Shown here in pieces: positions 11,499-50,018 of a DNA stretch of 64,000 bases. The notes under the pieces are model-generated. The model was given only the letters and a program-made list of their open reading frames with translations, was not told where the DNA came from and did not search any database. The stretch lies in NCBI GenBank assembly GCA_047495785.1, contig JBLDXI010000034.1, positions 124,001 through 188,000 of the forward strand. Reading direction: 5' to 3'. Origin of the DNA: Lepidodermella squamata. Lineage: Eukaryota > Animalia > Gastrotricha. How positions within the stretch are numbered: the stretch's first letter is position 1; the number at the start of each line of letters is the position of its first letter. The translations under genes and the position numbers were made by a program.

Positions 11499-12420
11499 TC
11501 ATAGACGTTCGCATAAGGCGGGTTTATACGCACTACAATCTCCCAACACCAGTCCAGTCAAATGCGCAAACATACCTGTATTATGAAAAGGTTACAATTT
11601 AAAACGAAGCTTAACTCCTATCAATCCCCATCCTTACAGTGCAAATTGAAGTTAGGCGGTCCAGGAATGTTGAGAAACGTGGCGTTGGCCGGCTCGCCGG
11701 TAATCCAGGAGTAAGTGGTCGGGTCAACTCGTTTCCCACCGATGTACGCTGGTTCAATATTTGAGGAAATCGCTTTAGCAGCGTCGAACATGGCCTGATC
11801 CTTGAGTATCGCCAGTGGCTTTGCAAGGGCCTGGCAAGCACTCACCGCATCAGTTCGATTGCCCCTAGTTGAAGTGCGTTGCAAGTTCGCTGGTGTCTGG
11901 AAACAATTCCATCTCGTTAACAGCATCAGCGCATATTTCCCTACTAGAACTTACGTCACCGCAAATGGCATGGTATGAATCCGAGCAACTTGAATCACCG
12001 AGGCCCTCTATCCTCATGGTCATACCTGTGAAAAAAAAAGTAAAACCAGTATCAGCTATGATCGAGCGCATATTTCGCAGCTCTCAAAAAAGACACTTTT
12101 GTGCCAGAGGCATGCGCGCGAACCCGAGATGGAAAATTCGTTGTTTCATATGAAATCTTACATTCGCCCAAGTTTGCTGGTGATAATCTCGCCCAAAATG
12201 GCGAATCCATAACAACATTGCTGCCATCGTCCCATTTGAAATCGGCCAAAATGCCAACGAAAGCAAATTGATAACGTGCAATTTTCAAGGCCAAATACAA
12301 GTCGGCCGGACTGGAGAACGTTGCTAGGCGCCCGCCCGCATTTTTACAGGCAAGTCTCTGGCTATAAAAGCTTTGAGCGTTGAATAAATAATACTTGAGG
12401 GGTGGCAAGTCACCCAGGCA
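11499..12420 (-). pseudogene. 5'-truncated double-CTLD paralog 2
   Basis: Last four exons intact (about 12161-12420, 11954-12024, 11638-11896, 11499-11575 ending ALCERL-TGA). Homology stops mid-exon at CLGDLPP. No upstream Cys-repeat exons found for this copy. Confidence 0.75.
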
Positions 12421-12887
12421 ATAAAGTTTGCAGCTGTTGATTTGTTGTTGTAGCCGTAGGTAGCGCGTTTATGGCGACCCAGTTTAATGACCGGACACGA
12501 TCCGTAGCTCTTCACGCAGCTAGTAGCTAGACCGGCGAGTAAACACTCGTATACAGATAATCCCTTGATCGAGGACTGTAAAACACGGCAAACTGTCTCA
12601 GACGCCGCGCGGGGTGCGTGTCGAGGTGCGCAGCCGGTGCGTATGTGCTTGAGGACTGGGGCCTCAAGCGTATGCGTGCGTATGTTGTATGAAGATTAGA
12701 TGGATTGGCTGGATTGCGCGTGATTGGAGCAATAAATGCTCCGAGAAAGGCGATTTCTCATATTTTTTCTCGCCAAAGACATCGATTCGTCGCTATCATG
12801 GGGTCTATGTATGGCGGCGGGACGAAACCCATCTGGGTTTAGTTGTAGCTTTCAAGCGCAACAAGCTCGGGCGTCCACCGAGATGCA

Positions 12888-16939: not shown

Positions 16940-18557
16940 TCACACCTGAGAAGGTAACTGCATTTGTGAAACAGATTCAATGAGGTCATAGGTCAAATTT
17001 TCCTGCGAAATCGATTTTTTGCCGAAAATTTGCTCCGGTGATGAGGCGTCATCAAATTCTTCAAACGTCACTCGCTTCGAAATTTCGTCCTTGTTTCGCG
17101 CTTCAACAAGGCTCGACGTAGATTTCGAAATATTTCGAACCAAAATCGCGGCTGATTTTTGCCGATTATCAGCTATTGCCTGCCGTAGTTCGTTGATGAA
17201 CGGCGTCGAGGCGTGGAATGATTTGACGACTTTTCGCCTCGGTTTTCGCGCCGATTGGCGCCGTTTCAATGCCGCGTCGATTTTTTCGATTTCAGACCGT
17301 GATTTTTGGCGTAGTTCCAAATTTTTTGGGAGTAAAACAACGATCCGCTTTATGCCGCAATGAATTAGCAGATTGGCACAGGTTTCACAGGGGCAACATG
17401 TCGAATAATATCTATTATTTAAAATTTCAATTATTTGAAAAAATTCGAGAGTAATTTGAAAATTCAAAATTTCGCATTGAACGGGGAAGATTCGATTTTT
17501 GAATATTTCGAGAAGCATGTTTTGAGGATTATTTTGGATATTCGAAATTTTTGTCTCGAAGTTTCTAAAATTATAAAAAATCAAAATTTTAAATTTTAAA
17601 TTTTCAAATTTTCAAAATAAAGAACGAAATTCGAATTTTATAAAATTTTAACAATTGTTCAAAAATGTTGTTTAATTGTTAAATTTTTTTAAATTTAGGG
17701 AATTCTGAAGATTTAAAAACAGAAAACATTACTTCAATGCAAATTGACATTGAAATATGATTTTCAAAAAATTCAAACATTTTTCAAAATTTTCAAAATT
17801 TGAAAATATTGTGAATTTCACACCTGCATCGTCGCTTGTAGAGTTCAGAGGTGCGAAAAAGCAGGGCTCGTTCCGCTGCTCGGCAACAAGCCGCCTTATT
17901 AAAATTCTCAACCCCAGCATCGCCTCCAACAGCCCGCTCACTCGTACTCGCTGGCTCGCTCCAACCCACTGCGATAATTTTACCATCTCGGCTAACAATG
18001 CAAGATCCGGCCTCATTTTCACCGCCTTTTCTCGCCGAAATAACCGCAATAGCCATGAAATATTCTTTCCAAGAAATGGGTGGAGTCGAACTGGAATCGA
18101 TAGCTCGAGACAAAAAGCAACCCGGTCGGTTTTTTCGGTAATTTTTCACCGCGATTTCCGGATCGTTGTCCTCGAATAAATCCAGGGTAACATCGTCGCT
18201 AATCGGCTGGTAAGTCACGATTTTTGATAATTTCAAATCACACGCCATTTTAGCGCATTCGACCCCTAGCGAAGCCGTGCTGAACAAGGTCAAGCGTGAC
18301 GGGTTTGAAGACGATGACGTCACGGTCGAGTTAATTGCTTGTTTTGAGGAGATATCAGCGATGCCGCGGTATAATAAAGCGATTTGACCTGCTTCTAAAT
18401 TGCCGTCTTCAGGGTCATTGAAGCCGATGCCGATGATGGTTTGAGATGATTCATCGACCAGGCACGCTCCGCTGCGTTTCGACGCGTCGCATCGACTTCG
18501 ACGAGATGCGGCGAAAGCGATTGCCATGAAATAATCGTCCCATGATAAATTAGCCAT
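16940..18557 (-). CDS. Tandem double-domain dCMP deaminase-like protein (DCTD/CDADC1-like), catalytic motifs degenerate
   Basis: Exons 17824-18557 and 16940-17411 join in frame (KRRCR-YYSTCCPCETC). Two DCTD-type starts SWDDYFMAIA and SWKEYFMAIA, each followed by GAC/GSC-[LI]V and IG/VG; PCxxC only in domain 2; charged C-terminal tail. Confidence 0.8.
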
Positions 18558-20006
18558 AAAATATTAGAAAAAATTCTAGAAGCAAAAAAATAATATGAAA
18601 TATTTTAGAAGATCTGTAAATTTTTGGAATTTTGGGACAATATTTGCAAAATATCGGAAAATTTGGTACCATGACCTATAAATTTAAAGTTTAGTGGGTC
18701 AGATATTTAGTCTCAAGGGTTCACGGTCTCAATTCAAACAATTCAAGGAAAAAAAATTAGAAATAATTTCAAGAAAATAACTAACAAATTTTCTGAATAA
18801 ATCCTTGAAGAACAGGATGCAATCATGATTTTTTTGAATTATTAGAAAAATCGAAATCTATTCGAAAATTGTCGGAAATTTTAACAACATCCGGTCACTT
18901 TGTTAGGGACTGAATAATAAGGTGGCTCCAGGTACAAAATATTCGATTTTTTAATATTTTCAAATAATTTTCAGCGGGTGTTACAAGTTACAAGGCAACT
19001 AAGGTTATTACCACCTTAATAATATTTATTTTTAATTTTATATTTGATTCGGAAATATTTTATCAGGAATAAAAACTTTGTTAATAAATTTGAAAAATTA
19101 TTGTTGATGCCTATTACCTATAGCTAGGTGTGTGAAAGATATCTCACAGCACGTAGCTATATTGAGGCGGATCAAGTAGGTATCAAGTATGGCTAATTAC
19201 ACACGCTCGAGTGGACGGAGCGTGTCTGCGCGAAAGCCGCCGGCGGGGCCAAGAGACCGGCCGATATGTGCCCAGAAAAACAAGACAAGTAAATATTATT
19301 ATTGCGGCTTTGTTCATCTGTCGCTGCTGCATTATTCACATTTATTCAATGCCCACCTATCTATGACTATACCTATATATTACTGCGCGCGCTTAGATTC
19401 GATGATGCGCGTCGATAAATTTTTGCGCGGTCATCATGATGCGCGCCTAAAGTGCGTGCACGTGCGCACACAATAAAAAAGCACACACACACACGCAATA
19501 AAAATTGAGGCTCAATAATTATTCGCAATTTTATGAGCGCGGCTTTGAAAAAATTGCGCGATTTTAAAACCTCAAAATGCACACAAAAATACTATAAAAT
19601 TCCAAAAGTGTGAGATAAAAATTAAAAAAAATTAAAATTGAAATTGAAATTTTTTATTAAGACAAGAGTAATAAATTAAAAAATAGATTTACAGGATTTT
19701 TGGTCATGGCCCCTGATTTTTAGAGTATTTCAATTTTTCAACTAAGAATTCACTTTAATCAATTTTTTGGCCCAATCACGATGAACTTATATCTTATCTA
19801 GAATTATTATCAATTTGTGGTTATCAAAGAGCCACAATTTCTGTAATCAAAACAAGCGATAATAGCGAGATAAAAGAGAGACGCGGAAAAGGCCTTGACT
19901 ATTTGTAAGCTAAGTTATTTAATATTATATCAGGAAGTGGAATAAACCACAAAAATAGCTCACAAAGGCTCATGCCTAAAGCCCCTGAAATAACACTTAC
20001 GCTATT

Positions 20007-21362
20007 ATGAAGAATATTTTTTTAACACGTTTGCTGCTCTCAGGTAGATAATTTTTTTTAATTAGAATAATTATAATTCAATTTTGGCATTTAATAATCT
20101 CCACAAGTTTAGGGTCATAATTTCCACCAAAATTTCCAAAATTTAAGAAAATTTGGTTCTACGAAAAATTGTAAAGGTGTGCAGCTGATAAATTCCAGGC
20201 TAAACGCTAGCCTTGGTCACTGTTGGATTTTCCCAAAAAACCTTTTTCGCTTTTGAATTTCAATTTTTCGAATTCTTCCAAAAATTGAAATAAGTAAAAG
20301 CAAAAAGTTTCGAATAATTTTTACAAATGTCCCAAATAGTTGAATTAAGGCGTTTTGATTGGTTATTTTATATTTTCAATAATTTAATTTTTTAAATCAT
20401 GAAAAATATGAGCTTTTCGTTTTAAAATAAATTCGGCATAACCTTTTGATCTATCGATCACTTTTCTAATTTAATTTTTTAAATCATGAAAAATATGAGC
20501 TTTTCGTTTTAAAATAAATTCGGCATAACCTTTTGATCTATCGATCACTTTTCTAATTTTAGCCATCGGCCTCAATTTTCTTGAAGCAGCTAAATGGCCT
20601 CGGCCCGATGCCTTACTCGCCTTTGTGCCTCTCGACTCATTCTCCGAACTCACCGATATCGCCTACAACATCAAACCAAGCGCTGAATACTCGCCAAAAC
20701 TCGTCTCATCCTTCACGGGGCCATTCGACCTGCCCCTGAGCAGCTACTCAGTCAGCCAAAACTGGTCAGCAATAAGCCAGTACCACTTCGAAACCGCGCC
20801 GAAAAGCTTCACAATTGCCTACTACGCCTTTGTGCCTAATCGCGGCAGTGGCGCGTTTTTATCAATGACAATCGGCCAAAAATCGCTGGAAATATTCCAC
20901 GAATGGCCGCGAACTTTGAACGTTTACGGCTCGTTGCGGCTGTTCGAACAAATTTTCAGCGTTGTCGCGTCGAATCAAAATTCTTGGAATTTCATCACTA
21001 TGACTTATGACGATTCGAATCGAAATCTAGCGTTGTACCTTGATTCGCGTTTGCTGGTTTCGCGAAAGCTGGAAGCTGCAATTTTTGAGCTGCGTTCGGA
21101 TGGAGTTTTTCTTGAATTTGGAATGGCGATGCGGAGGCAGGATGAAGTTATTTTCATGCAATCAACGCAAGCTCTGGCTTGTGTCATGTTTTATAACGTG
21201 ACCTTGACCGAACGCGAAATTAGCCTGTTGCCTATGGTTTGCCAGTCGAAAGGCCAGAAGGACCTGCCGAATAGCGGCGCTGGAAAATGGACGGGCAGAC
21301 GTTTGCAATTTATCGAAATTTCACTTTTCACAATTTATTTGCTATTTTCGCGCTCAATTTAA
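20007..21362 (+). CDS. LamG/pentraxin-like (concanavalin A fold) single-domain protein, probably GPI-anchored
   Basis: Exon 1 20007-20043 splices in frame to 20563-21362: MKNIFLTRLLLSAIGLNFLEA signal peptide; SFTIAYY..P, WNFITMTYD, LYLD, C...YNVTLTEREI motifs; C-terminal NSGAG followed by a hydrophobic tail. Confidence 0.75.
20381..20554. repeat. 87-bp tandem duplication in intron
   Basis: aatttaattttttaaatcatgaaaaatatgagc...cgatcacttttct occurs twice, starting 20381 and 20468. Confidence 0.85.
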
Positions 21363-21899: not shown

Positions 21900-24800
21900 T
21901 TAAGGCCGTTCGCATATGGCTGTTTTGAACAAATAGCACCACGTCGACTTGAGCCCGCTCATATTAACGAGCATACCTGTATTAGGAAACGTGCAGAATA
22001 GTTACATGTCAAGCCTAATAGCCCCATACTCACAGTGTTGCTCGTTGTCAGGAGGCTGGGGAATGCCTAGAAACGTGGCATTAGCCGGTTCGCCTGAAAT
22101 CCAGGAATACGTCACGGGGCTCGCTCGTTTTGCGCCGATGAACAGCAACAAGTCTATGGATGGGACAAGCGCTTTAGCGACGTCAAACATCGCCTGATCC
22201 TTGATAATCGCCAGCGATTTCCCCATGCTAATGCACGCGTTCACCGCGTCATCTCTCGTGCCTTTTGCTGCTGTGCGTACCAAGTTTGATGTCGTCTGAA
22301 AACCAACAATTGTATATCTCGCATCAGACATCAGAAGAATCAACACATATTGTCTTCTACTTACATTTCCGCAAAGACCATAGCGGGCCCTTGTACAAGT
22401 AGAATCACCAATGCCAAACTGCGACAAGGCCATACCTAAGCCGTAGCAAGTGTATAGAAAACCTCAAACAGTAATTTATCACGGTTTCGCTACTTCAACG
22501 CTGTAGGCTAATATTACCTAAATTTGCCTAAAAAAGTTCCACTATTTTCAAACCCTTGTCACTCCATAACCATGGGATTTTCCGGGCTCAAATTTTGACC
22601 CTAAACAGTCAGAACTCATTTCAGTAAGCTCACATAACTCATAGCCAATTCCTCACCGTTAGCGAGCTATTGTTGCTCAAAGTCAAGAAGGGCAAAAATT
22701 GAAAATCTCCCGACGAATTTGCATAAAAGCTTCACTTCTGAACCTCAACATGTGTCTACCTAACGATTTTTCTCTTTTGACCACGTTCTTCAGCGTGCTT
22801 TACAAGTACAATTCCCGAAATTGGTAGCCCGAATCGCCCAAATTGAGCGATTATGCAGTTTAGGTTCAGAAGTGAAGCTTTTTAAAAAATTTAGGGCACC
22901 GTCGAGAGATGTTCTATTTTTGCCTTTTTTGACTTTGAGCAACAATAGCTCGCTAACGGTGAGGAATTGGCTATGAGTTATGTAAGCTTACTGAAATGGG
23001 TTCTGACTGTTTATGGTCAAAATGTGAGCCCGGAAAACCCCATGGATTTGGAATGACAAGGATTTGAAAATAGTGGAAATATTTTAAGCATATTTAGGTA
23101 ACCTTACCCTAGTGGTAAAATGATTCACTATGTTACTCCGGAGACTTCGAAAACTTACATTCACCCGTACTTGTTGGTTGGTTAGGTCCCCACAGCGGCG
23201 AATCGATTATTACAGGACTGCCATCGTCCCATTTGAAATCAGCCACAATCCCAACGTATGATTCTTGCAAGGACAAAAGTTAAGATGTGAAACTCTCGAT
23301 CCTTTTATTACGTTGTCAAAATCTCGAGGTGCAAAGGTCGCGTTCTGCTACGGGTAAACACATCTCTGATTCATTAATTGCAACGTGTGTCTAGAGCAAT
23401 GCATTGACAAGAGTGTCCCTTTTTACTTGTTTTAAGCTTAATAGCAGGCCCTCATCCGATAAGCTTTAGTTGGCGTTAAATTACTGCTTTTTAATTTACT
23501 GCTCCTGTAGCCTGTTGTTCAAATACTGGCGTTAAGTTACCGCCAGTACGTGAACATTTGGATATGGATCGGACACTTATTTTTCGACCGCATTGACTTT
23601 GAACGCCTGACGTCTTATAAACAAGCCTATAGGTTCCTTCTGCCGCGCTGCCAACGATATTCAATCGATAGAGAATCGTCTGACCTTCATCGAGAAGAAA
23701 TTTCAAAATTACAAAATTTATCCCGGGTAAGGACCGCCGCTATCCCTGGCTGGATAACCCAGGTTTCACCAAAATTTGGGCAACTCCTGGACCATTTTTC
23801 ACTCCAACTAACGTAAAAATACCGCCAGCTAAGCTCGCTTCGCTCGATATATTGGGTATATTCAATGAAATATGGTCCGCTAATCGAAAAATCGACTGAA
23901 ACTAAGAATGCAAAAACAAGCGAGCGCTAAAATCACTATCCCCCTCTCAGCGAAAGGTCCATCTTCGACACTGTAAAGGCATTACCTAGCAAACAGCAAA
24001 CAGCTTCTCGTTTTGTTCTTGGTCGTTACATTTACCCGGTTAAAATTTCTGATAAGGTGGACAGCTCACTTTCACCGTGCCACCGCTCACTTTGTATCTC
24101 TAAGTAGGATACTTCATGATACAAAAATGTCGGCATGGTGGGATTTTTGGAAACGATAGAGCGAGAAAAGCTCTCTGTGACGCATATAATGAGAAAGAAA
24201 TAAAGAATGACCGATTTCAAGATATCGCCTTCAAAAATATGCAAATTTACATGTAAACGTGCTATCCAAGGTCGTGGGAAAAGTCGGCATTTAGAATTAA
24301 GGAGGGGTTTTTCACTTATTTTTTGTTACAATTTCGCATTTCGCATTGCGAGTGCGCACTCTGATCACTACGCTCTCTATGCTCTCTATTAGAGTATCGA
24401 GAACTTTACATCCTTAACTTTTTCCGTACCATCTTGGGAGCCAGCCATCTGCGAGACCACAGCAAAGTCTTCTGGCGTGGAGAATGTTGCCAGGCGCCCA
24501 CCCGCATTTTTACAAGAAAGTCTTTGGTCATAAAATGCTGCTGCTCCAACCGGAGAAATGAAGTACTTGGGGGGTTTCATCGCATCAGCCAAGCAGCTTG
24601 CGTAGTTATCAGCAAATAATGTCGAGTTTGAGTATATTTTCATCTTATAATTTAGAAGCAGCACAGTAAAGATGCCGTTCAATTCATGTTTGTTACCTGG
24701 GTGGAACCATTCGGGCAGATATTGTAACACTTCTTTCCATTAGGCGTGTTGCACTGAACAGCATTCTAGAGAAAAATTACATTGATTCCAAAGCGCAATT

Positions 24801-27800
24801 TTAATATAGCATTCCGAATATCATAGGAACTCCAATCCGACATCAAGAATAATATCGCGTGATAGTATAATATATAAGGCGATCGCAGAAAGCATATCGA
24901 AGCATATTGAAAAGCGAGCGAAGCGAGAAACTTTTGAAGATTTTCCAGTAAAGCACGCTCCAAAACCTCTCAAAATTAACGAAACAGTGGGATAAATGAA
25001 TTGAAATGAAAAATAACGATGAAAAAGAGGGAAAACGTTAAGATTGAGCACGCGATTTCACGTTCATCCAGGAATTTTCCTATCTAAAAAAACTCGAAGG
25101 GGGTCGCGACCTACCGTTTGAGATGCGCTGATTTAATGCATTAATTTTAATATATCGCCTCGGGTTTTGATTTCGATTGTAGTACTAAATTTAAGGCCCA
25201 CCCCGGTATAGAAGCCCATGGGCTTGTGTTTGAGACCGGGCTTATTTTCAGGCAAATACGGTAATTCTCAAGGAAAACTAAGTTAGCTAAGTAAGTTAAC
25301 TAAGTAAGAACAGCTTAGAAACGTTAGCTATGCTTGACGTTCAACGTAAATAAATACTCATCACCCTTGATAAGCAGGAGGCTTTGTTCTTGAAGACGCC
25401 AGTTGAAAATTGCGCGGTTTCATTTGCCAGGCATTTGGTGCTGTTCAATCGGCATGCTATGAACGCGCTAGTTGTGGCATCGAAGCAGCGAATGTGGGGC
25501 TTCACGGAGTCAGCTACCGCGCCTGTATTAAAATTTAGTGTTGTAATAATCCAAGATGAAACATGGTATAGTTTAAAAAAGTGAGGTTAACGCTCCAGGC
25601 GTTCGAAATTCGAAATTTTGCTTATTCTCCCCTAGAAAAGTGACAACGAAAAACGACGAAAAATTTTTGGGGGCCTGGAAATAAGCCAACATTTTACATT
25701 CAATTACTATTTACCATTAATAATTTCTTTCTAGATCCATTCTGCGATACCCCATGGCCCTGGGAACCAATTGAGACTACACTACTACTGTTTTCAAAAT
25801 AATATAATATCAAACTCACTGCCGAAATTTTGAAGACACGCATCCAAGCTGGGGAAGCCTGTTCTTCCTTTCATCTATAGTAACAGAAGCGGTCATAAGG
25901 AGCTCATTAGCAAGGAGAAATTACCGTTGTGTTGGGGCAGGTAAAACCGCTTGGGATGCAGTTGGCGAATTGCTGGGCCGAGTCGACACAGGAATCAAAC
26001 TTCTGTTTCTGTTCATCCGAGATTTAATGTTTAGTTCGCAAAAGCTTAATATTACCTATTTACCTGAAATTGGTTCAAATCCGTTGTACAATTGTACATG
26101 TTAGCTTTCAGCGGAAGGAAGCCGTTGTAAGTGTTGCCGATCTAAGAATTAAAAGTGTTAGGCGTAGCGACGCAATAAAAAGTAAGCAATGAAAGCATTA
26201 GTGATCATAAGCGCGATTTGTTCTACATTTAAGTTTTTATTCAAAAGACCCCGAGTTGGATGAAATTGATTCTTCGAAAAAAGGCACAGCTCGGTTTATT
26301 GAAGAATGTTGAACTCAATTGGGAAGGGTTTTCTCTCGAATCTACGAACTTATCGGTTTTAACTGGGTAGCCGTGGAACTATAACTACCTAAGCAAACAT
26401 TGACACTTTTTAAGGAATGGCAATTACCCAAACAGCTACTTATTGAAATTGCAAAATCTATTTCAACCACAAAAAAACTCGGTGGTTGCGGATTAAAATA
26501 TTGTTGTCTCGAATTTTGCAAATTACTTTTGAATCGTGCATGATATTTTCACGCGGTTTTCAGCAAAAGAGCGAGTTTGATTCTGCTCTGGTTAAATGCA
26601 ATCGGCTCGCTAATGATTATAAAATGGCCGTTGAAAAATTTAAGTTTGAAAATGTATCAAGTATGATTAAATCCAAAAATCTTTCTAGAACTATAACTCT
26701 TGAAAAGGTCCAAGCTTACTTTACCCGCCGTGCTCTTGGGTTCTCCACCTATGATTTAAACAGGCCGAGCTACAAACAGCGTCTAGAAACTCTTCGCATT
26801 AAATCGCTCGAGGAGCGTCGCCTAGCCTATGACTTATGTTACCCTTATAAAATCATTAATGGCTCGGCGAAAACCTCTATAGTGAAAAATATTGTAACCC
26901 TAAATAACAATAATCGCGGTAATAAATATCGTTTCCGTGTTATGAATCCGAATCTAAATTTCAAAAATCCCACTAAGCCCATATACAAAAATTATTTTCT
27001 AAACCGTATTGTAGATGTGTGGAACAGGTTACCAGAACATGTCTTCAATTTTAATGATAGTCTGTCCGTAAATGTTAAAAATGAAATCTTCAAAAATATA
27101 ATTTTTCGCGTGAACTTACAACAGTATTGTAAAGGCAATCTTATTGTGAATGCTGCTCGCAATGCCGATTATTAATTGGGTTATAATGTTAGAGGCCTGC
27201 GTGCCCTTCTAATCCGGTAAATGTGAAATTTACGAAATAAAATTATTATTATTATATTATTGTAATTGTTTAAAATAACCAGACCTCTCTATCTATCATA
27301 GTTTTATTTTGGCATCAAAATTCAAAATCTTGCGACAAAAGACAACCATTTTAAATGTTGAAAAAGTAATTTTTTGCGCAAGGCGCATGCGCGTTTGAAC
27401 TTTAGAGTATACCATTTAGAGTTTAGAGCGACGCACAGGTAAACATGAACATGTTCACAGATAAAATTCGAAATATTCTTGTCATACAATTTGAGAACTG
27501 AGGAAAATGGATACATTATTTTCGAAAATCATAAAAAATTCTCAAAACAATTGAAAAGTACTCCAAGATTCATATTCGAAATATATCAGAATTCATGCTC
27601 AAAAATCCTACTAATTTTCTACCGACACCCTAAAGCATCTACTATGATCAAGTACCATCTTGCATCTTAATTTCCACATTGACTGCTTCATTTCGAGTTG
27701 GATAGTGCGTAAGACATTGTCGAGCTCAAGCAAGCTAACTTCGCGAAATTTTACCCATTCAGTCACTGAAATTCTATAAGTTTGGCCTCGATAAAACTAA

Positions 27801-30144
27801 AAAATTCACAAATTTTATCGAGTTCTCGCTTTAGCTCGTGATTTCGATTTTTGATAAGAAGCCTGCTAGTTTGGTGGTTTGAATCGAGCATAAGGCAACA
27901 CTCTAACAGATAAGAAACTAACGATCTTTCCATAGTGAACTTATTCGAGCTGAATTTGCAAACAGTGCGGCACGCAACCACTTTTCTATGCCACCCAACG
28001 CCAATCAGCCCATTGTAATTTTAATTAATTTCGAAATTAATTAATTTTCAAAATGTTTTGATTTCTGCTCATAAATACTAGAAGCGGCCATCTATCTAAT
28101 GATACCAGGTTCGCCAGTGTTTCCTAACGGATAATATTCTGAAATTCGCAAAAAGGGCTATAATTGGGAATTTCAGGCAAAATTGCAATTTTTCTGCCGC
28201 GGTTAGCTCTTCTGGAAATCGTTTGAAAGATTTGACAAAATCACTTTGCCCATGTTGAGCATTTTCTCTACCTGATATAAACATTTTCTGGTAAATAATT
28301 AATTTCGATTTTCCAATTTTTTCAGAGCTCAATAAATTGTTATTTGCTAGAATATCTCTGAATGAAGCAACGCGATGAGAGAATGCAAAGTCCAAGTTTC
28401 ACGGCCCAAAATAGTCGGGAAAATATTTGCCGGAAATTTTTTATATATTCGGATAGAGAAAATTCTCAAAATGGGTAATGTGATTGTTTAAACAATTCCC
28501 AGAATAGCCAACCGCGGCAGAAGAAGTTCAATTTTGGTGGCCGCGTGCCGCACTCTTTCCAAATTCAGCTCGAATAAATCCAATCAGTGTTGTCTATGGA
28601 AGCAAGTCAAACTAATAGATTATCATGCTCCAAAGCCAATTGAAAGTAGTATATAAATGCACCTCAACCGAACTAACGCTGAAGAAAATCTCAGAATTTT
28701 CTTATTTTTAATAAAAGGAAAGTGTGGAGTTCATACTGCATCCGTCTGGTGTTCAAATTCAAACCCTTCATACTGCTAAAAACACTGCTGCTATTTCAGG
28801 AAATTCTGCCTGTTTCAAGTACTACTTGAGATTGGTTAATTGAGTGATTTAATTATCGGTGTGGCTATTGGCACATAATTATGTGCCTCTTATTGGCTAT
28901 TGGCACATACATTATGTGCCCCTTAATGGCTATTGGCACATAAAATTTTGCATTCAACTGCTTTTTTCGGGAGTTCAATTCCTAGATACCTGCATTTCAA
29001 CTTTGGATTAGCAATCTAGGGGTGGCGAATTCACTGGAATCGTCGGATTTTACGTAGCTGTGCGACAGACCTCAGATACTCTACATTTTTTTTAAACAAT
29101 TTCTAAGCGTACTTGGATAAATTCAAAAGAATGAATGATACCGTTACGAATGATATCTTATAATTAAAGGGTGTTGCTATTGGCACATAATTATGTGCCT
29201 CTTATTGGCTATTGGCACATAAATTATGTGCCCCTTAATGGCTATTGGCACATGACGCTAATTTAAAATTTCGATGTTTTAGAAAATCACGCATCGAATT
29301 GTTCCAAGAGTATTGATACCAGGGTTTTCGTCAACGGGGAATCGAATGGCGATGTCGAAATTGCAGTTAAGGGCCCGCAAATTGGGGTATCCGTCATCTA
29401 ATGGGTAGCCCAAGTAGAGTATCTGAGGTCTGTCGCACAGCTACGTAAAATCCGACGATTCCAGTGAATTCGCCACCCCTAGATTGCTAATCCAAAGTTG
29501 AAATGCAGGTATCTAGGAATTGAACTCCCGAAAAAAGCAGTTGAATGCAAAATTTTATGTGCCAATAGCCATTAAGGGGCACATAATTTATGTGCCAATA
29601 GCCAATAAGAGGCACATAATTATGTGCCAATAGCAACACCCTTTAATTATAAGATATCATTCGTAACGGTATCATTCATTCTTTTGAATTTATCCAAGTA
29701 CGCTTAGAAATTGTTTAAAAAAAATGTTTCAACTTTCAAGTTACCATGATCTCATCCGTTTTCGCACAGCCAGGGCTGCCCGGCCGACATGTCGCTGAGT
29801 TGGTTGTTAATCGGTAGCACAATCTAGCAGTCTATTTAGGATAAAACACAATAGATTCAAGCGTCAGGCTCGCTGAAGTAAACCTACTTACCGCCCGCAA
29901 GCACTTGGATTCGTCCGACAATCTTTCCCCGAGCTGGAGGAATAGCGAAATTTCAGATATTACATGCGCAGATTGATGACACATTTGATACCTGGTATTC
30001 GCTTAATTTATAACAGCCGTTGGGTAACTCGCGGCAACTGGCGAAGCTGTCATCGAATTGCGAAAAGCAACGGGCCCAGTCGCCACACACAACCGCGTCA
30101 ATACCGAGAAATAGGACGATTAAATTCGAATTTAATAGATGCAT
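21900..30144 (-). CDS. Secreted 5x Cys-repeat + double CTLD protein, paralog 4 (13 exons if the gained intron is spliced)
   Basis: ATG 30144; exons about 29992-30144, 29892-29933, 29745-29831, 26064-26141, 25925-26008, 25819-25875, 25364-25523, 24697-24765, 24430-24643, 23159-23263, 22364-22434, 22034-22296, 21900-21975 ending AICERP-TAA. Confidence 0.8.
22515..23100. mobile_element. Foldback MITE with ~240-bp TIRs
   Basis: 22515-22750 is the reverse complement of about 22858-23100 (e.g. cataactcatagccaattcctcaccgttagcgagctattgttgctcaaagtcaa); TA at both ends. Confidence 0.85.
23266..24431 (-). mobile_element. TIR element inserted in the CTLD1 exon, Introner-like
   Basis: Imperfect ~35-bp TIRs (TGGTACGGAAAAAGTTAAGGATGTAAAGTTCTCGAT vs TGCAAGGACAAAAGTTAAGATGTGAAACTCTCGAT), AGA direct repeat on the minus strand; splits an exon that is continuous in all other paralogs. 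Confidence 0.75.
26486..27262 (+). mobile_element. 5'-truncated non-LTR retrotransposon (CR1/L2-like) 3' end
   Basis: LEKVQ..FTRR, SY.QRL..L...SLEERR...DL...YKIING, F.NRIVDVWNRLP: typical post-RT region; followed by AATAAA and an (ATT)n tail. Confidence 0.85.
27938..28580. mobile_element. MITE-like element with terminal inverted arms
   Basis: ttattcgagctgaatttgcaaacagtgcggcacgc (27941) inverted at 28545-28579; internal ggatagagaaaattct shared with the 9359-9637 element. Confidence 0.6.
28863..29727. repeat. Near-perfect complex direct and inverted duplication with palindromic minisatellite
   Basis: ggctattggcacataattatgtgcc triplets at 28863, 29176 and inverted about 29555-29635; 29414-29727 is the reverse complement of sequence in 28863-29253. 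Confidence 0.9.
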
Positions 30145-41578: not shown

Positions 41579-44500
41579 TCATAAACCTGAAAATCATAAA
41601 GAACCTCCTATTTTAATTCGATGATGCATTTTTGACCAATTCTTACCAGAATAGGCAGCACAGTTGATTTCAAGGATTCCAAGGTGCTCCTCCGGTAACA
41701 TGCGATTAACGACACTCAGACATGCGATGGAGCCGTGCATATCAGCAGCGGCGACACTGATTTCAAAAGAAATGTCGATTCATACTCATATTCCGGCCTT
41801 TAACTCAGTAATCCTACCTTCCAAGCCGGAACGATGCAGCAGACGTAGCCGACGAGAGTTGGCCACTTGGTACGTTCACCGACTTGTAATTGCCATCGCA
41901 ACCGACTTGCAAAGCCTGGCTATTCGAATCGAGCGACAACGTGTAAAAATGCACGGGAGTCGGTGAACCGACTTGCTGATAACACGTCGTAGTTAATGAA
42001 AAGCCTGATGCCGTTGCGAAGCTAAATGTGGTCGCATTGCTAAGCTGGAGGCTTATTTCGCCGGTTGTTTGCGCTGGGTTCGAGTATTCAAGAAACGGAG
42101 CCGGTAAGCTTTCAGGCTTCGCGAAGAAGCTCAGCGTGAAAGATTGGGCGCCGAAATTCAACTTAGCAGCCGTCATTCTGACCTGGTTTCCGCCATTCAA
42201 ATAAACGCCTTTATTGCTGACCCCAAACACGCTTGTCCCAGGTAGAAAAGCCGATTGACTGGTAACCGCAGTTCGAGGAGCAATCAAATCTTCGAAGTCG
42301 GCAGCTAGAGGGAAATAAGCGACGTGCCCGTTGACTATCTTATCAATATCGCCTGGAATAATTGGCTGCCCGGCGTGAAGTTGGTAGCACTTTCTGCGAA
42401 GCGTTCGAACATTTTGGAGAGACAGAGCTGTTCTGTGAATTGAAAAGCAAGACACAGTGATAGAGGTGAAAGGCGTGCTGCCCAGTCTTCCCAGCTTCAT
42501 AGATGAGATGGTTGTTGTCGGCGCGATGGTGTTGGAACCGTCAAGTGGAAGGCTGCTCATATCATCGCAAAACACCATTTGTGTTGTAGTAGATAGTTTG
42601 TAGGTCACGCCAATGTGGTGCCACTTGTTGGTGCTTGACGAGCATTTTACGCTCACTTCGGTACCTGAAAGGTGGAATCATTAGGGTCATTTAACAGTTT
42701 AGAGACGAGGCAACACCAACAATCAGTGAAGAGGGATGCCCCCTTTGGAGTTCGGAAAGCTTCGAATTCTCCGATAAAAGGTAAGGGTCCCCCTTTCATT
42801 CTGGGTCCAAACTAGCTCGATTTACCCCTTGAGAGCTGGACTGAGTCGGACTACTACCATCAATTCATTCTCCGTTAAAAAATTTAGATTAATTGCAAAT
42901 TTCTTCGATTTATCGATTCTTTGCATAGCTTGGCAAATTTCAAGACCAATTTTTTTACAACAAAATTGAGAATCCAAGTCTATAAAGTAAAAATTGAAGA
43001 TTCGAAAGGTGCGATTTGACTCACCATCATGTCTGGTAACGATGACGATCTTGGCGGTAGGGTTGAATGCAACTGTGAGAATCGTGGATCCATTTGCGGC
43101 CACCATCTCAATCATAGGCGTGTAAGTGGAATCGCCATACTCAGCCTTGGCGTAGACAGCGAGGGTGTAATCGGTTGATAAGGATGAGAAAGCCGTGGCT
43201 GGAATCGTTACATAGCCAAGGCCCGTTAGTAAGGTTGCCGTTTTCTCGAAACCAAATGGTCCTGTGACGTAGCCGTAGGGTCCAGTCATTTGAGCGGTAA
43301 CAGACATGGGCCCGATGTCCGACAGGTCAGCGTTCAGCGGCCAGTACGCAGTTTCGCGAGGAAGGCCATTAACGGCATCTGTTCATTTTATAGTCATAAA
43401 AAATGAATTATCTCACTTATTGCGATTGAATGCTAATAGGTTAATGGAAAGTTTTCCAAATTTCCAATTTTTTTTTAATTTCAACTTGGGCTATCAGAAT
43501 TTCCAAGCTAAAAAGTTGTGGAGAAACACCAAGGAATAAAATGAGTTGAAACATACTTGTTTCGCATTGCAAAGAAGTTTTGAAAAGCTTTATTGGCTGA
43601 AAACGAGAAAGAGACGACTCTAATTCGAGAATCAATGTGTCTCACTTACCTGCCAAGGCGAAGCACATGGATCGTCTTTAGCGACGCATTTGTAATTCCA
43701 ATCAGAGCTGGAATAGCACAGATTCCGCTGCAAAATACCATTTTTACGCAATTAGTTAATTGGTAAACAAAATAGCAGCAAACCGGCTGAATCGCCACTA
43801 GACATTCTGCGTAATTGTCAGCGAACAAAGCTGCTGAGGTGTAATTACCGGACTATTCAATGACAATCATCATTATGGCAGAAAATAGACGATTTCCCTT
43901 GCAAATCTACCGGTGTAGTTCCAGTGGGGCAAGAGCCGTAGCAAGTCGTAGAATAAGTACCACTCGGCATACAATCAACTGCAGCCTATTGAGAATTGAA
44001 AGAACGTGATTGTGATAAAACTTGAACCTAACCCCAGATAGGCAGGAGGCTGCAGACGTGAATTCTCCGCCATCGCCCAACTTCATATGGGAAAAAATGA
44101 TTAAGGAAACTGTTTTTTTGAGTGCGATGTAAACTGAACAAACACTGATCGAAGAATTAATGCAGGATGTGTAGCAACCCACGAACTGGTTGGCTCCTGA
44201 AACGCATCGCAGGAAAGGAACTGTTTCGCGATTATGTTAACGCAATTTGCTTTTCCTATCGATTTTCTAGCTTACCTTTACAAAGCGCGAAGGAATCAAA
44301 TACGACATTGCCAGGCTTTGGGGTCTAGTAAAATTCAATTATTAAATACGACAATTTTATTCTTAAAATTCACCGTATTCAGCGGGCAAGCTTTTGAATC
44401 TGGAACGCAAATGGCTGACGAGTTTGCTGAGCTGACGCATTTTTTGTGCTTCCCCTGTTTTGAAAAGGTTGAACAAATGCTTGGGTCTTGCTATAGCTTA

Positions 44501-47524: not shown

Positions 47525-50018
47525 TCAGATATCAGAGTGAACAGTTTGATTCTGATGTTCATCGAATTCATTTTCAGTTGAGGCTTTCGACTTCTTAGCC
47601 ATTGGAATAAAAACAGCCGAACCAACAAAGGATGAGTAGACTAAACATATCATCGAGATGAACACTGTAACAGCATTACCATGGTGACTGCTGTCTTGAA
47701 GAATGAACACGATAGCAACGCCGCCGATGTAGAGCGACACAGCGAATAAGTTTGCAAGAAACATCGGCTTTATCTGATCCACGTTATGAATTCGATTCGA
47801 TTTAACCAAGTGAGCGGTTGAAAATGTGGCGAGTAGACCGGTAAGTAAAATGGTCATATCCACGGCAATCAAAATCGTGACGAATATAGACGAATTAGTT
47901 GAAGCACAGTTGATGTTTCTAGCTCCGAAATAAGCATCAATCTTGAAGTCATATACCAATGCTACGCGATCAACGTCTTGCGTTATTTCAGACACGGTTT
48001 GAGTGAGAAACCAAGTAAGGATTACGATGAAATTTAAAGCCATCGAGATAACAACTACGAGACATACAAACTTGTTGCTTATGTCAGCTTTCATTTTGGC
48101 TTTCGCTTCGCGATATCTTCGTTCGTGATTGCTGCTTGTCACTCCATAGACATCCCTTAGGATATGGATTGAAGACTGAATGTTGATTAATGAGTGTCTC
48201 CTGATAGTTAACAAAGATCGCCTCGTGCTGAGAATGAAACCAGCAAGGGTTCCATGGGCTAGGGCAAGGCCAGTCGTGAGGAAGAAGACTCGGCCGTAAC
48301 AAATCGATGAGCTGCCTTGAGACACAAAGAAAGCTGCTGCTATGTCGATCAGAACCAAGGACACGCACATGAGAATACAGCTTAGCTTCTTGTTATAACA
48401 GTTGACTCTTATTGCCAAAGTGACCTTAGTTAAAAAATAACAAACTAAAGTGGGAAAGGGTTAAAGTATGTCTCATACTTTCGTGAGGGCAAGAACAAAA
48501 GCTAGAACTGAGATCGTAGCCGTTGCTGAGATTGAAATGCGATCTAGCTGAATGATTACATCAGCCGAGTCGCTAGGCAACGGATAGGGTAGGGGAAGAT
48601 GCGAAACGGCTGAATATGATGAAATGTTTGTGATGTTATCGCTGTTGCATGTCACATGATGCGTTACAAGTAATTTTGAGGCGTTAGCGGACCAATGCGC
48701 CACCGATTGGGGTTCAAAGTCGTACTCTACCCTTGCCGAGTACTTGAACTTTCCATAGCGTAGATTGCCGAAATCTAATCGCCTTGCACTATCGTTGGCT
48801 ACCATCATCACTTCATAAGGCTTGGTTTTATAATCTCGCAGGGACATGTTTCTACTCCTTAGAATCGTCTCAGTCTCATTTAGGATCATAATAGCCGTCA
48901 GGATACGGTCGTAGCAAAGATGGCGAAAGTCCGAGTCCGGGGTTACTAAACCACCAGTGTAATTGCTGAAAAGAGCCTCAAATTCGGGCAAAGTGTGGCC
49001 AAGGGCCGTTCGCCCAGTCATGGGTCTCAGAGCATCTAAAGGTGAGCCGATGAAGTAGGTCATCTTGAACTGTTCGAGAATCATTGAGCGGTTGCATTCA
49101 GCAGAAATGTTGAAAGGTAAGGTTGTGACGTCGATGAAGCTCAAAAACTGGAAAATGAATAGGTATCTCGGCCCGGTCATCCTGAACTTGTAGGCTTGGC
49201 AGAGAAATTTCAACCCAGCTGCTGCTTCAGCAGTTTCCATTGCAAACACCCGAATGTCTCTTGCTTTCAATGGCGCCATGAACTCATCGCTGAAATCTAA
49301 ACTACCTTCGAACGCCTGAACCTCAAACCCATTTGCCAGGGCAATTTTATAGAAAAGATTTGCAGTCTCATAGTTGTAAGAATTGCCATTGTTGAAAATG
49401 ATGCCGAGCTTCCTGATTCTAGTCTGAGTTTTCAGGAAATACAGCCTGGCAAATATCGGGAGCTCCGCTGGCGATCGGATTCGATACATGTTGGGGTACA
49501 GGCCACGGCGAGCTGTTTGGACTGGAGAAGTGCAGGACCCAGCAATCATGAGCATGTTCATGTAGCCAGCTGTTCCGCCCCAGGCCTTGCAAGCCGGTGA
49601 CAGGAAAGGTCCCATTGTTACCGGAGACGTATAGACATCAGTCATTGCTTCTGTTCGACGAGCGAAATCGATTGCTTGTCGGACGGCTTGGGCTCCACCG
49701 GGTCCTTCAAGATAAGCTGAAACTATGCTGAAGAATGAAGGAGAAATGCCTACCTTCGTTGACGAAATCTAGTTCGATTTGGTAGTCTGGCAATATGTCG
49801 CTTCTCCTGTTCACAATATCAGCCACCATTTGCTGAGCAGCCTGGCACATTTTGTTGTCTCGCGGCTCGTAGCCTGTCATCATGAGTATAGACAGCATCG
49901 ACAGGCGATGCCGCTTTACTTGATAATTGTCTCTTTCAAAAAGGTCCATTTGAGATTCAACCCGCGTAATGAATGCCATTATGAAGACCATTGCAGCTTT
50001 GAAATGCATATCCCACAT
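47525..50018 (-). CDS. Class C GPCR, GABA-B-receptor-like (Venus flytrap + 7TM), divergent
   Basis: Exons 49754-50018, 48479-49704, 47525-48424 join in frame; VNRRSDILPDYQIEL, YPNMYRI, LCQAYKFRMTGPRYLFIF motifs of the ANF-receptor domain; no Cys-rich domain; seven hydrophobic segments. Confidence 0.85.

Follow-up and report, generated by a model that had tools for sequence, protein, structure and literature searches.

Single introns derived from transposons are known from maize, rice, and Oikopleura, and to our knowledge clear single-event gains of this kind have rarely been documented in animals. Another such case is Doc1053 in the Drosophila sechellia gene GM26034, a single transposon-derived intron (PMC3296678). 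Introners, by the working definition, are at least four similar introns that are alike to both boundaries and lie in non-paralogous genes (PMC12130899). In the family IE1 of Micromonas pusilla, the target site duplication (TSD) is 3 nt long, the donor comes from the element, and the acceptor comes from the TSD (PMC11282704). Codon-adding Introner families also exist, e.g., in Aureococcus sp. (10.1101/2022.06.06.494994), and the animal groups known to contain Introners are very few (10.1101/2022.06.06.494994; PMC12130899). The assembly of the gastrotrich Lepidodermella squamata postdates the genome set used in PMC12130899 (August 2023), and a literature search joining Introner and gastrotrich returned no paper.

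The DNA analyzed here, hereafter the window, is a stretch of 64,000 nt of this genome (assembly GCA_047495785.1, contig JBLDXI010000034.1, positions 124,001 to 188,000 of the forward strand), and all coordinates are counted from its first nucleotide. The window contains a tandem family of secreted proteins sharing one layout, namely a signal peptide, small four-cysteine modules, and two atypical C-type lectin domains. Full gene models were obtained for the paralogs p1, p3, p4, p5, and p6 and a partial one for p2; all are stop-free and their intron positions match. The p5 lectin exon matched the Pfam family Lectin_C at E = 5e-4. The protein searches were performed exon by exon: p4 exon 9 found no close relative, and the best match of the p5 exon was 43% identical and belonged to generic lectin repeats. 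Hence, the protein collection searched holds neither a spliced nor an empty p4 product.

The paralog p2 (11500-12520) has intact lectin exons, but the first of them opens with an upstream sequence that differs, and four-cysteine exons were not detected beside p2; a domain swap or truncation is possible. Elsewhere in the window, long open frames at 47528-49768, 20529-21359, 17796-18563, and 41817-43382 (431, 311, 277, 256, 287, and 186 aa) belong to other genes, among which one dCMP deaminase-like start and one LamG-like frame were recognized by eye. A perfect 87-nt tandem duplication (2.1 copies) lies at 20380-20559.

The gene p4 (21900..30144, minus strand) consists of 13 exons and encodes 484 aa without a stop or frameshift, in agreement with the preliminary description, which had noted stop-free downstream exons. 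Its CDS of 1,455 nt carries zero lesions, and every splice dinucleotide and 29 of the 29 cysteines are retained. Five paralogs carry the exon of the first lectin domain unbroken; in p4, as had been claimed and as the paralog comparison bore out, it is split by an insert into exon 9 (24430..24643, minus strand) and exon 10 (23159..23263, minus strand; 105 nt long, both of its ends being in phase 1 in the gene model). Exon 10 carries the lectin-fold core (VGIVA, FKW, W), which is conserved and intact in p4. The paralog tree places p4 as sister to p5 (support 98/98), which makes a single gain on the terminal branch of p4 the simplest history. An old intron later filled by a transposable element was rejected: this position is free of introns in every paralog, and the terminal inverted repeat (TIR) reaches the boundary.

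The insert is a TIR element of 1,166 nt (23266..24431, minus strand) with TG..CA ends. On the minus strand, its left junction reads CAAGA/TG GTACGG (T = 24431, GT = 24429-24428) and its right junction reads GTCCTTGCA/AGA ATCATAC (AGA = 23265-23263). These letters, given in the preliminary description, were confirmed in the window, and contigs of a DNA run with 0 differences from the window bridge both junctions; an assembly artefact was therefore rejected. The element size of about 1.17 kb, the AGA duplication, and the imperfect TIRs of about 35 bp proposed earlier also hold. The TIR arms 23271-23308 and 24388-24425 are 71% complementary without gaps, and the gapped alignment of the left (24396..24431, minus strand) and right (23266..23301, minus strand) TIRs, an imperfect match of about 36 nt, reaches the terminal TG..CA; its score was attained by 5 of 20,000 random pairs of the same spacing drawn from the window. 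The left copy of the AGA duplication lies at 24432..24434 and the right copy at 23263..23265 (both minus strand). A 5-bp duplication CAAGA (left copy 24436-24432, element end 23268) fits the letters as well and restores an identical empty site, but TG..CA ends result from the 3-bp reading alone, which is therefore preferred.

The largest open reading frame of the element is at most 88 aa, and the element is non-coding. The Pfam search with the insert's open reading frames found no transposase or other transposable element domain, and the Rfam search gave no match. Academ-type DNA transposons have YR..YR ends and TSDs of 3-4 bp. The TG..CA ends and the 3-bp duplication would fit this type, an assignment that we offer as a lead only. 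The element is probably composite, because its interior parts match repeats of differing depth in the DNA run. In particular, a segment at approximately 23461..23762, which contains a 41-nt hairpin (23516-23556) and is probably a nested MITE-like piece, has a depth of 670-1790 vs. 30-45 for single-copy sequence.

Other repeats were observed in and near the p4 introns. A high-copy repeat in intron 7 (24908-24997) is connected with the insert's interior (24034-24067 and 24150 onward) through a deep DNA contig; the two have no local similarity to each other in the window. The intron following exon 10 contains a fold-back MITE (22503-23112) with arms of about 213 nt that are about 80% alike end to end. 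According to the DNA run, this MITE is present in very many copies. Nested fold-back arms are also found at 27941-28577, and intron 3 holds a young composite element (28858-29727) with 99-100% identical inverted and direct blocks made of 33-nt tandem units.

The proposed GT-AG intron (23264..24429, minus strand; phase 1, 1,166 nt) is shifted by two bases relative to the element. As the preliminary description had it and the junction letters confirmed, the donor GT lies two bases inside the left TIR (element bases 3-4), and the AG (23265-23264) comes from the duplicated target. On the gene strand, the right TIR contains a candidate branch site, CTTAAC (23284-23279), with a pyrimidine tract behind it; the next AG downstream is the one supplied by the duplicated target. 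The removal of 24429..23264 would give AGSQDESYVGIVADFKW in frame, with the predicted junction of 24430 to 23263 reading CAAGATG-AATCATAC, whereas an unspliced transcript would meet a stop 11 codons into the insert. The restored frame and the gain of one codon claimed earlier were upheld, with the reconstructed empty site as the reference for the gain: the spliced product would keep the TSD, TG, and A, i.e., net +3 nt and one Asp. The spliced p4 loop has the same length as that of p5, the nearest paralog in the window. Among the paralogs, the loop at the insertion site has a variable length of 5-9 codons, counted from G to VG, so one additional codon should be tolerated. In-frame exonisation via the internal acceptors 23365 or 23390 was also considered and rejected, as by eye both lead into a stop.

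To place this geometry against chance, insertion of the element was simulated at each position in the CDSs of four paralogs. An in-frame fit with both splice sites within 3 nt of the ends occurred in 1.2% of the insertions overall, i.e., in 2.4% in the present orientation and 0% in the opposite one; under looser limits, the share rose to 3% (12 nt) and 18% (25 nt). The geometry works only for a target starting with AG and for the present orientation of the element. Neat splicing would follow from just about 1-2% of random insertions into exons, so the element could not generate introns self-sufficiently, except by targeting AGN sites.

The same numbers bear on a different reading, in which a recent jump broke the gene without any useful splicing, so that p4 is a young pseudogene or a weak allele in a redundant family. 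Its in-frame geometry would then be a chance pick among about 2,000 windows, and the looser limits, under which 3-18% of random insertions seem spliceable, favor this view. In a genome rich in transposable elements and with large redundant gene families, a chance rate of 1-3% would be expected to yield several insertions of this kind. The splice sites, scored with a matrix from 55 local introns, are weak, which points in the same direction: the proposed donor and acceptor each lie at the 9th percentile of these introns, and donor position +4 is C, whereas it is A in 50 of the 55. Moreover, the proposed donor G/GTACGG at 24429 scores 3.9 and a rival donor T/GTAAAG at 24409, 20 nt further into the left TIR, scores 5.1 and would cause a frameshift. 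Meanwhile, the fit of p4 falls into the tightest class (1.2%), the TIRs are imperfect, and the gene is intact, all of which argue against a broken gene. It should be noted that the donor-like motif GAT/GTRAAR is present about 20 nt inside both TIRs, so that a donor is available whichever way round the element inserts. In the predicted fold of the pre-mRNA, the two TIRs pair with each other across both splice regions, a further point against splicing.

The preliminary description had called for the dN/dS of the downstream exons, and the values speak for a functional gene. Between p4 and p5, dN/dS was 0.28 upstream and 0.51 downstream of the insert. The downstream changes on the p4 branch were 25 synonymous and 25 nonsynonymous (P = 4e-4 against neutrality), and with 16:36 on the p5 branch, p4 is no worse than p5. 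The p4 branch is thus under purifying selection, a branch-wide measure that cannot date the insertion. The age bears directly on the broken-gene reading, as a dead gene would still be lesion-free in 14-34% of cases at 1% divergence, and with a probability of only 0.001-0.04 at 3%. Contigs of the DNA run that are identical to the window and have single-copy depth extend 395, 370, and 146 nt through the element; according to our computation, such contigs would hardly ever stay unbroken in the presence of a relative 5% diverged. A young sister copy is therefore probably absent, and the contig breaks suggest that the nearest relative of the element is probably at least 8% diverged, although an old element moving by cut-and-paste also leaves no young sister copy. 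No exact empty allele branching off was seen in the DNA run either. We infer that the insertion is old, and with neither a near-identical sister copy nor an empty allele in the DNA run, we regard a recent gene-breaking insertion as unlikely.

The expression of p4 was followed in the contigs of an RNA-like run, which comes from another sample with another organism label, may lack the insert, and shows presence, not absence. One contig is identical to p4 exon 9 at 24487-24589 (depth 19), and p4-identical exons 12-13 are found in spliced form with the last intron removed (depth 15). The inner ends of the insert (23310-23460 and 24065-24366) have a depth of zero in this run. On the broken-gene reading, the expressed exons would stem from an insert-free strain. 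A contig joining 24430 to 23263 was not found among the contig matches listed at a threshold of 85% likeness. Thus, the earlier claim that a transposon has become an intron is backed indirectly by the intact gene, the selection on it, and the expression of the flanking exons; we infer that the insert is spliced out, with an efficiency that is probably not full.

Two RNA contigs that cross the insertion site with other letters were rejected as p4 transcripts: they belong to paralogs with different loops (GYLYLLVG and GPQSVDTDTYVG). Judging by the RNA contigs, two or more closer paralogs exist whose loops differ at this site. In addition, contig breaks at 23216-23256 imply a 41-nt exact match to a locus or haplotype outside the window.

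The transcripts might also be processed by another route, in which exon 10 is skipped and the TIR donor splices to exon 11, or in which the useful product is a truncated, stalk-only protein. Since exon 10 has phase 1 at both ends, its skipping would also preserve the frame, and its acceptor is a weak AAG. The share of sampled words in the RNA-like run was 0.13, slightly nearer to the 0.133 expected for exons 8+9 than to the 0.178 expected for exons 8+9+10 (P = 0.08), a test that is not decisive. As already mentioned, exon 10 carries the conserved and intact core of the lectin fold, and we consider such a route highly improbable.

The p4 insert resembles the Micromonas IE1 and other TIR/TSD Introners in being a non-autonomous TIR element with a 3-nt TSD, a 5' splice site from the element, and a 3' AG co-opted from the TSD. 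Its derivation from a transposon is indicated by the TIRs and the TSD, and its position is new, as the five paralogs are continuous. As judged from the letters, both splice sites come from the element or the TSD and keep the frame, and both are weak. Introners, however, form multi-copy families whose similar introns lie in unrelated genes and are for the most part short and recent, whereas the p4 insert is one 1.17-kb, composite, and diverged copy; its 1,166 nt exceed the family median lengths of 30-654 nt (10.1101/2022.06.06.494994). No second copy was found in the window, nor by TIR pattern scans of metagenomes and viral contigs. The geometry class and the related sequence present along the whole element at several-fold depth in the DNA run would fit a true Introner family, one producing repeated introns in unrelated genes through the donor and branch signals of its TIRs and AG-containing targets. 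The contig breaks suggest, however, that these relatives are diverged rather than recently active, highly similar copies, and neat splicing of just 2.4% of random insertions in the present orientation and of 0% in the opposite one does not suit such a family, which we find very unlikely. The earlier proposal of a previously unreported Introner family was thus not sustained, as only diverged relatives are suggested by the DNA run and neither the window nor the scans yielded another exonic copy. The broader idea that this genome repeatedly gains introns from TIR transposons, either through the family of the p4 insert (which would be the first gastrotrich Introner) or through many transposon families with splice signals in their TIRs, appears quite doubtful.

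By analogy, the closest known kind is the single transposon-derived intron such as Doc1053. Both are exonic, TSD-flanked insertions that can be removed in frame and are absent from relatives, with five amino acids added by Doc1053 and one predicted for p4. Doc1053 is a LINE compared across orthologs, whereas the p4 insert is an apparently older, unclassified, non-autonomous TIR DNA element compared across paralogs. At p4, the TSD is found at the boundaries, the empty state in the relatives, and the host gene is intact and expressed, the latter in an RNA sample that may lack the insert.

Taken together, a single transposon-derived intron in p4, kept by selection, is in our view the rather probable explanation. 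It is supported indirectly, because the gene is intact and under purifying selection, the insertion is apparently old, the flanking exons are expressed, and the insert ends are without RNA. After the split of p4 and p5, a non-autonomous cut-and-paste DNA transposon would have entered an AGA site in the length-variable loop of the first lectin domain. Its 5' TIR would have happened to hold a GT two bases in and its 3' TIR a branch-site-like motif and a pyrimidine tract, with the AG given by the duplicated target. The major spliceosome would then remove 24429..23264 and leave one extra Asp, so that p4 could keep its function and selection could preserve the allele, a one-off intron that passed through a selective sieve. 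The p4 case confirms a known mechanism and adds no new one, and it would matter more if a family or a genome-wide pattern were real. The p4 locus is a clean, paralog-controlled case in which each splice signal can be assigned to the TIR or the TSD.
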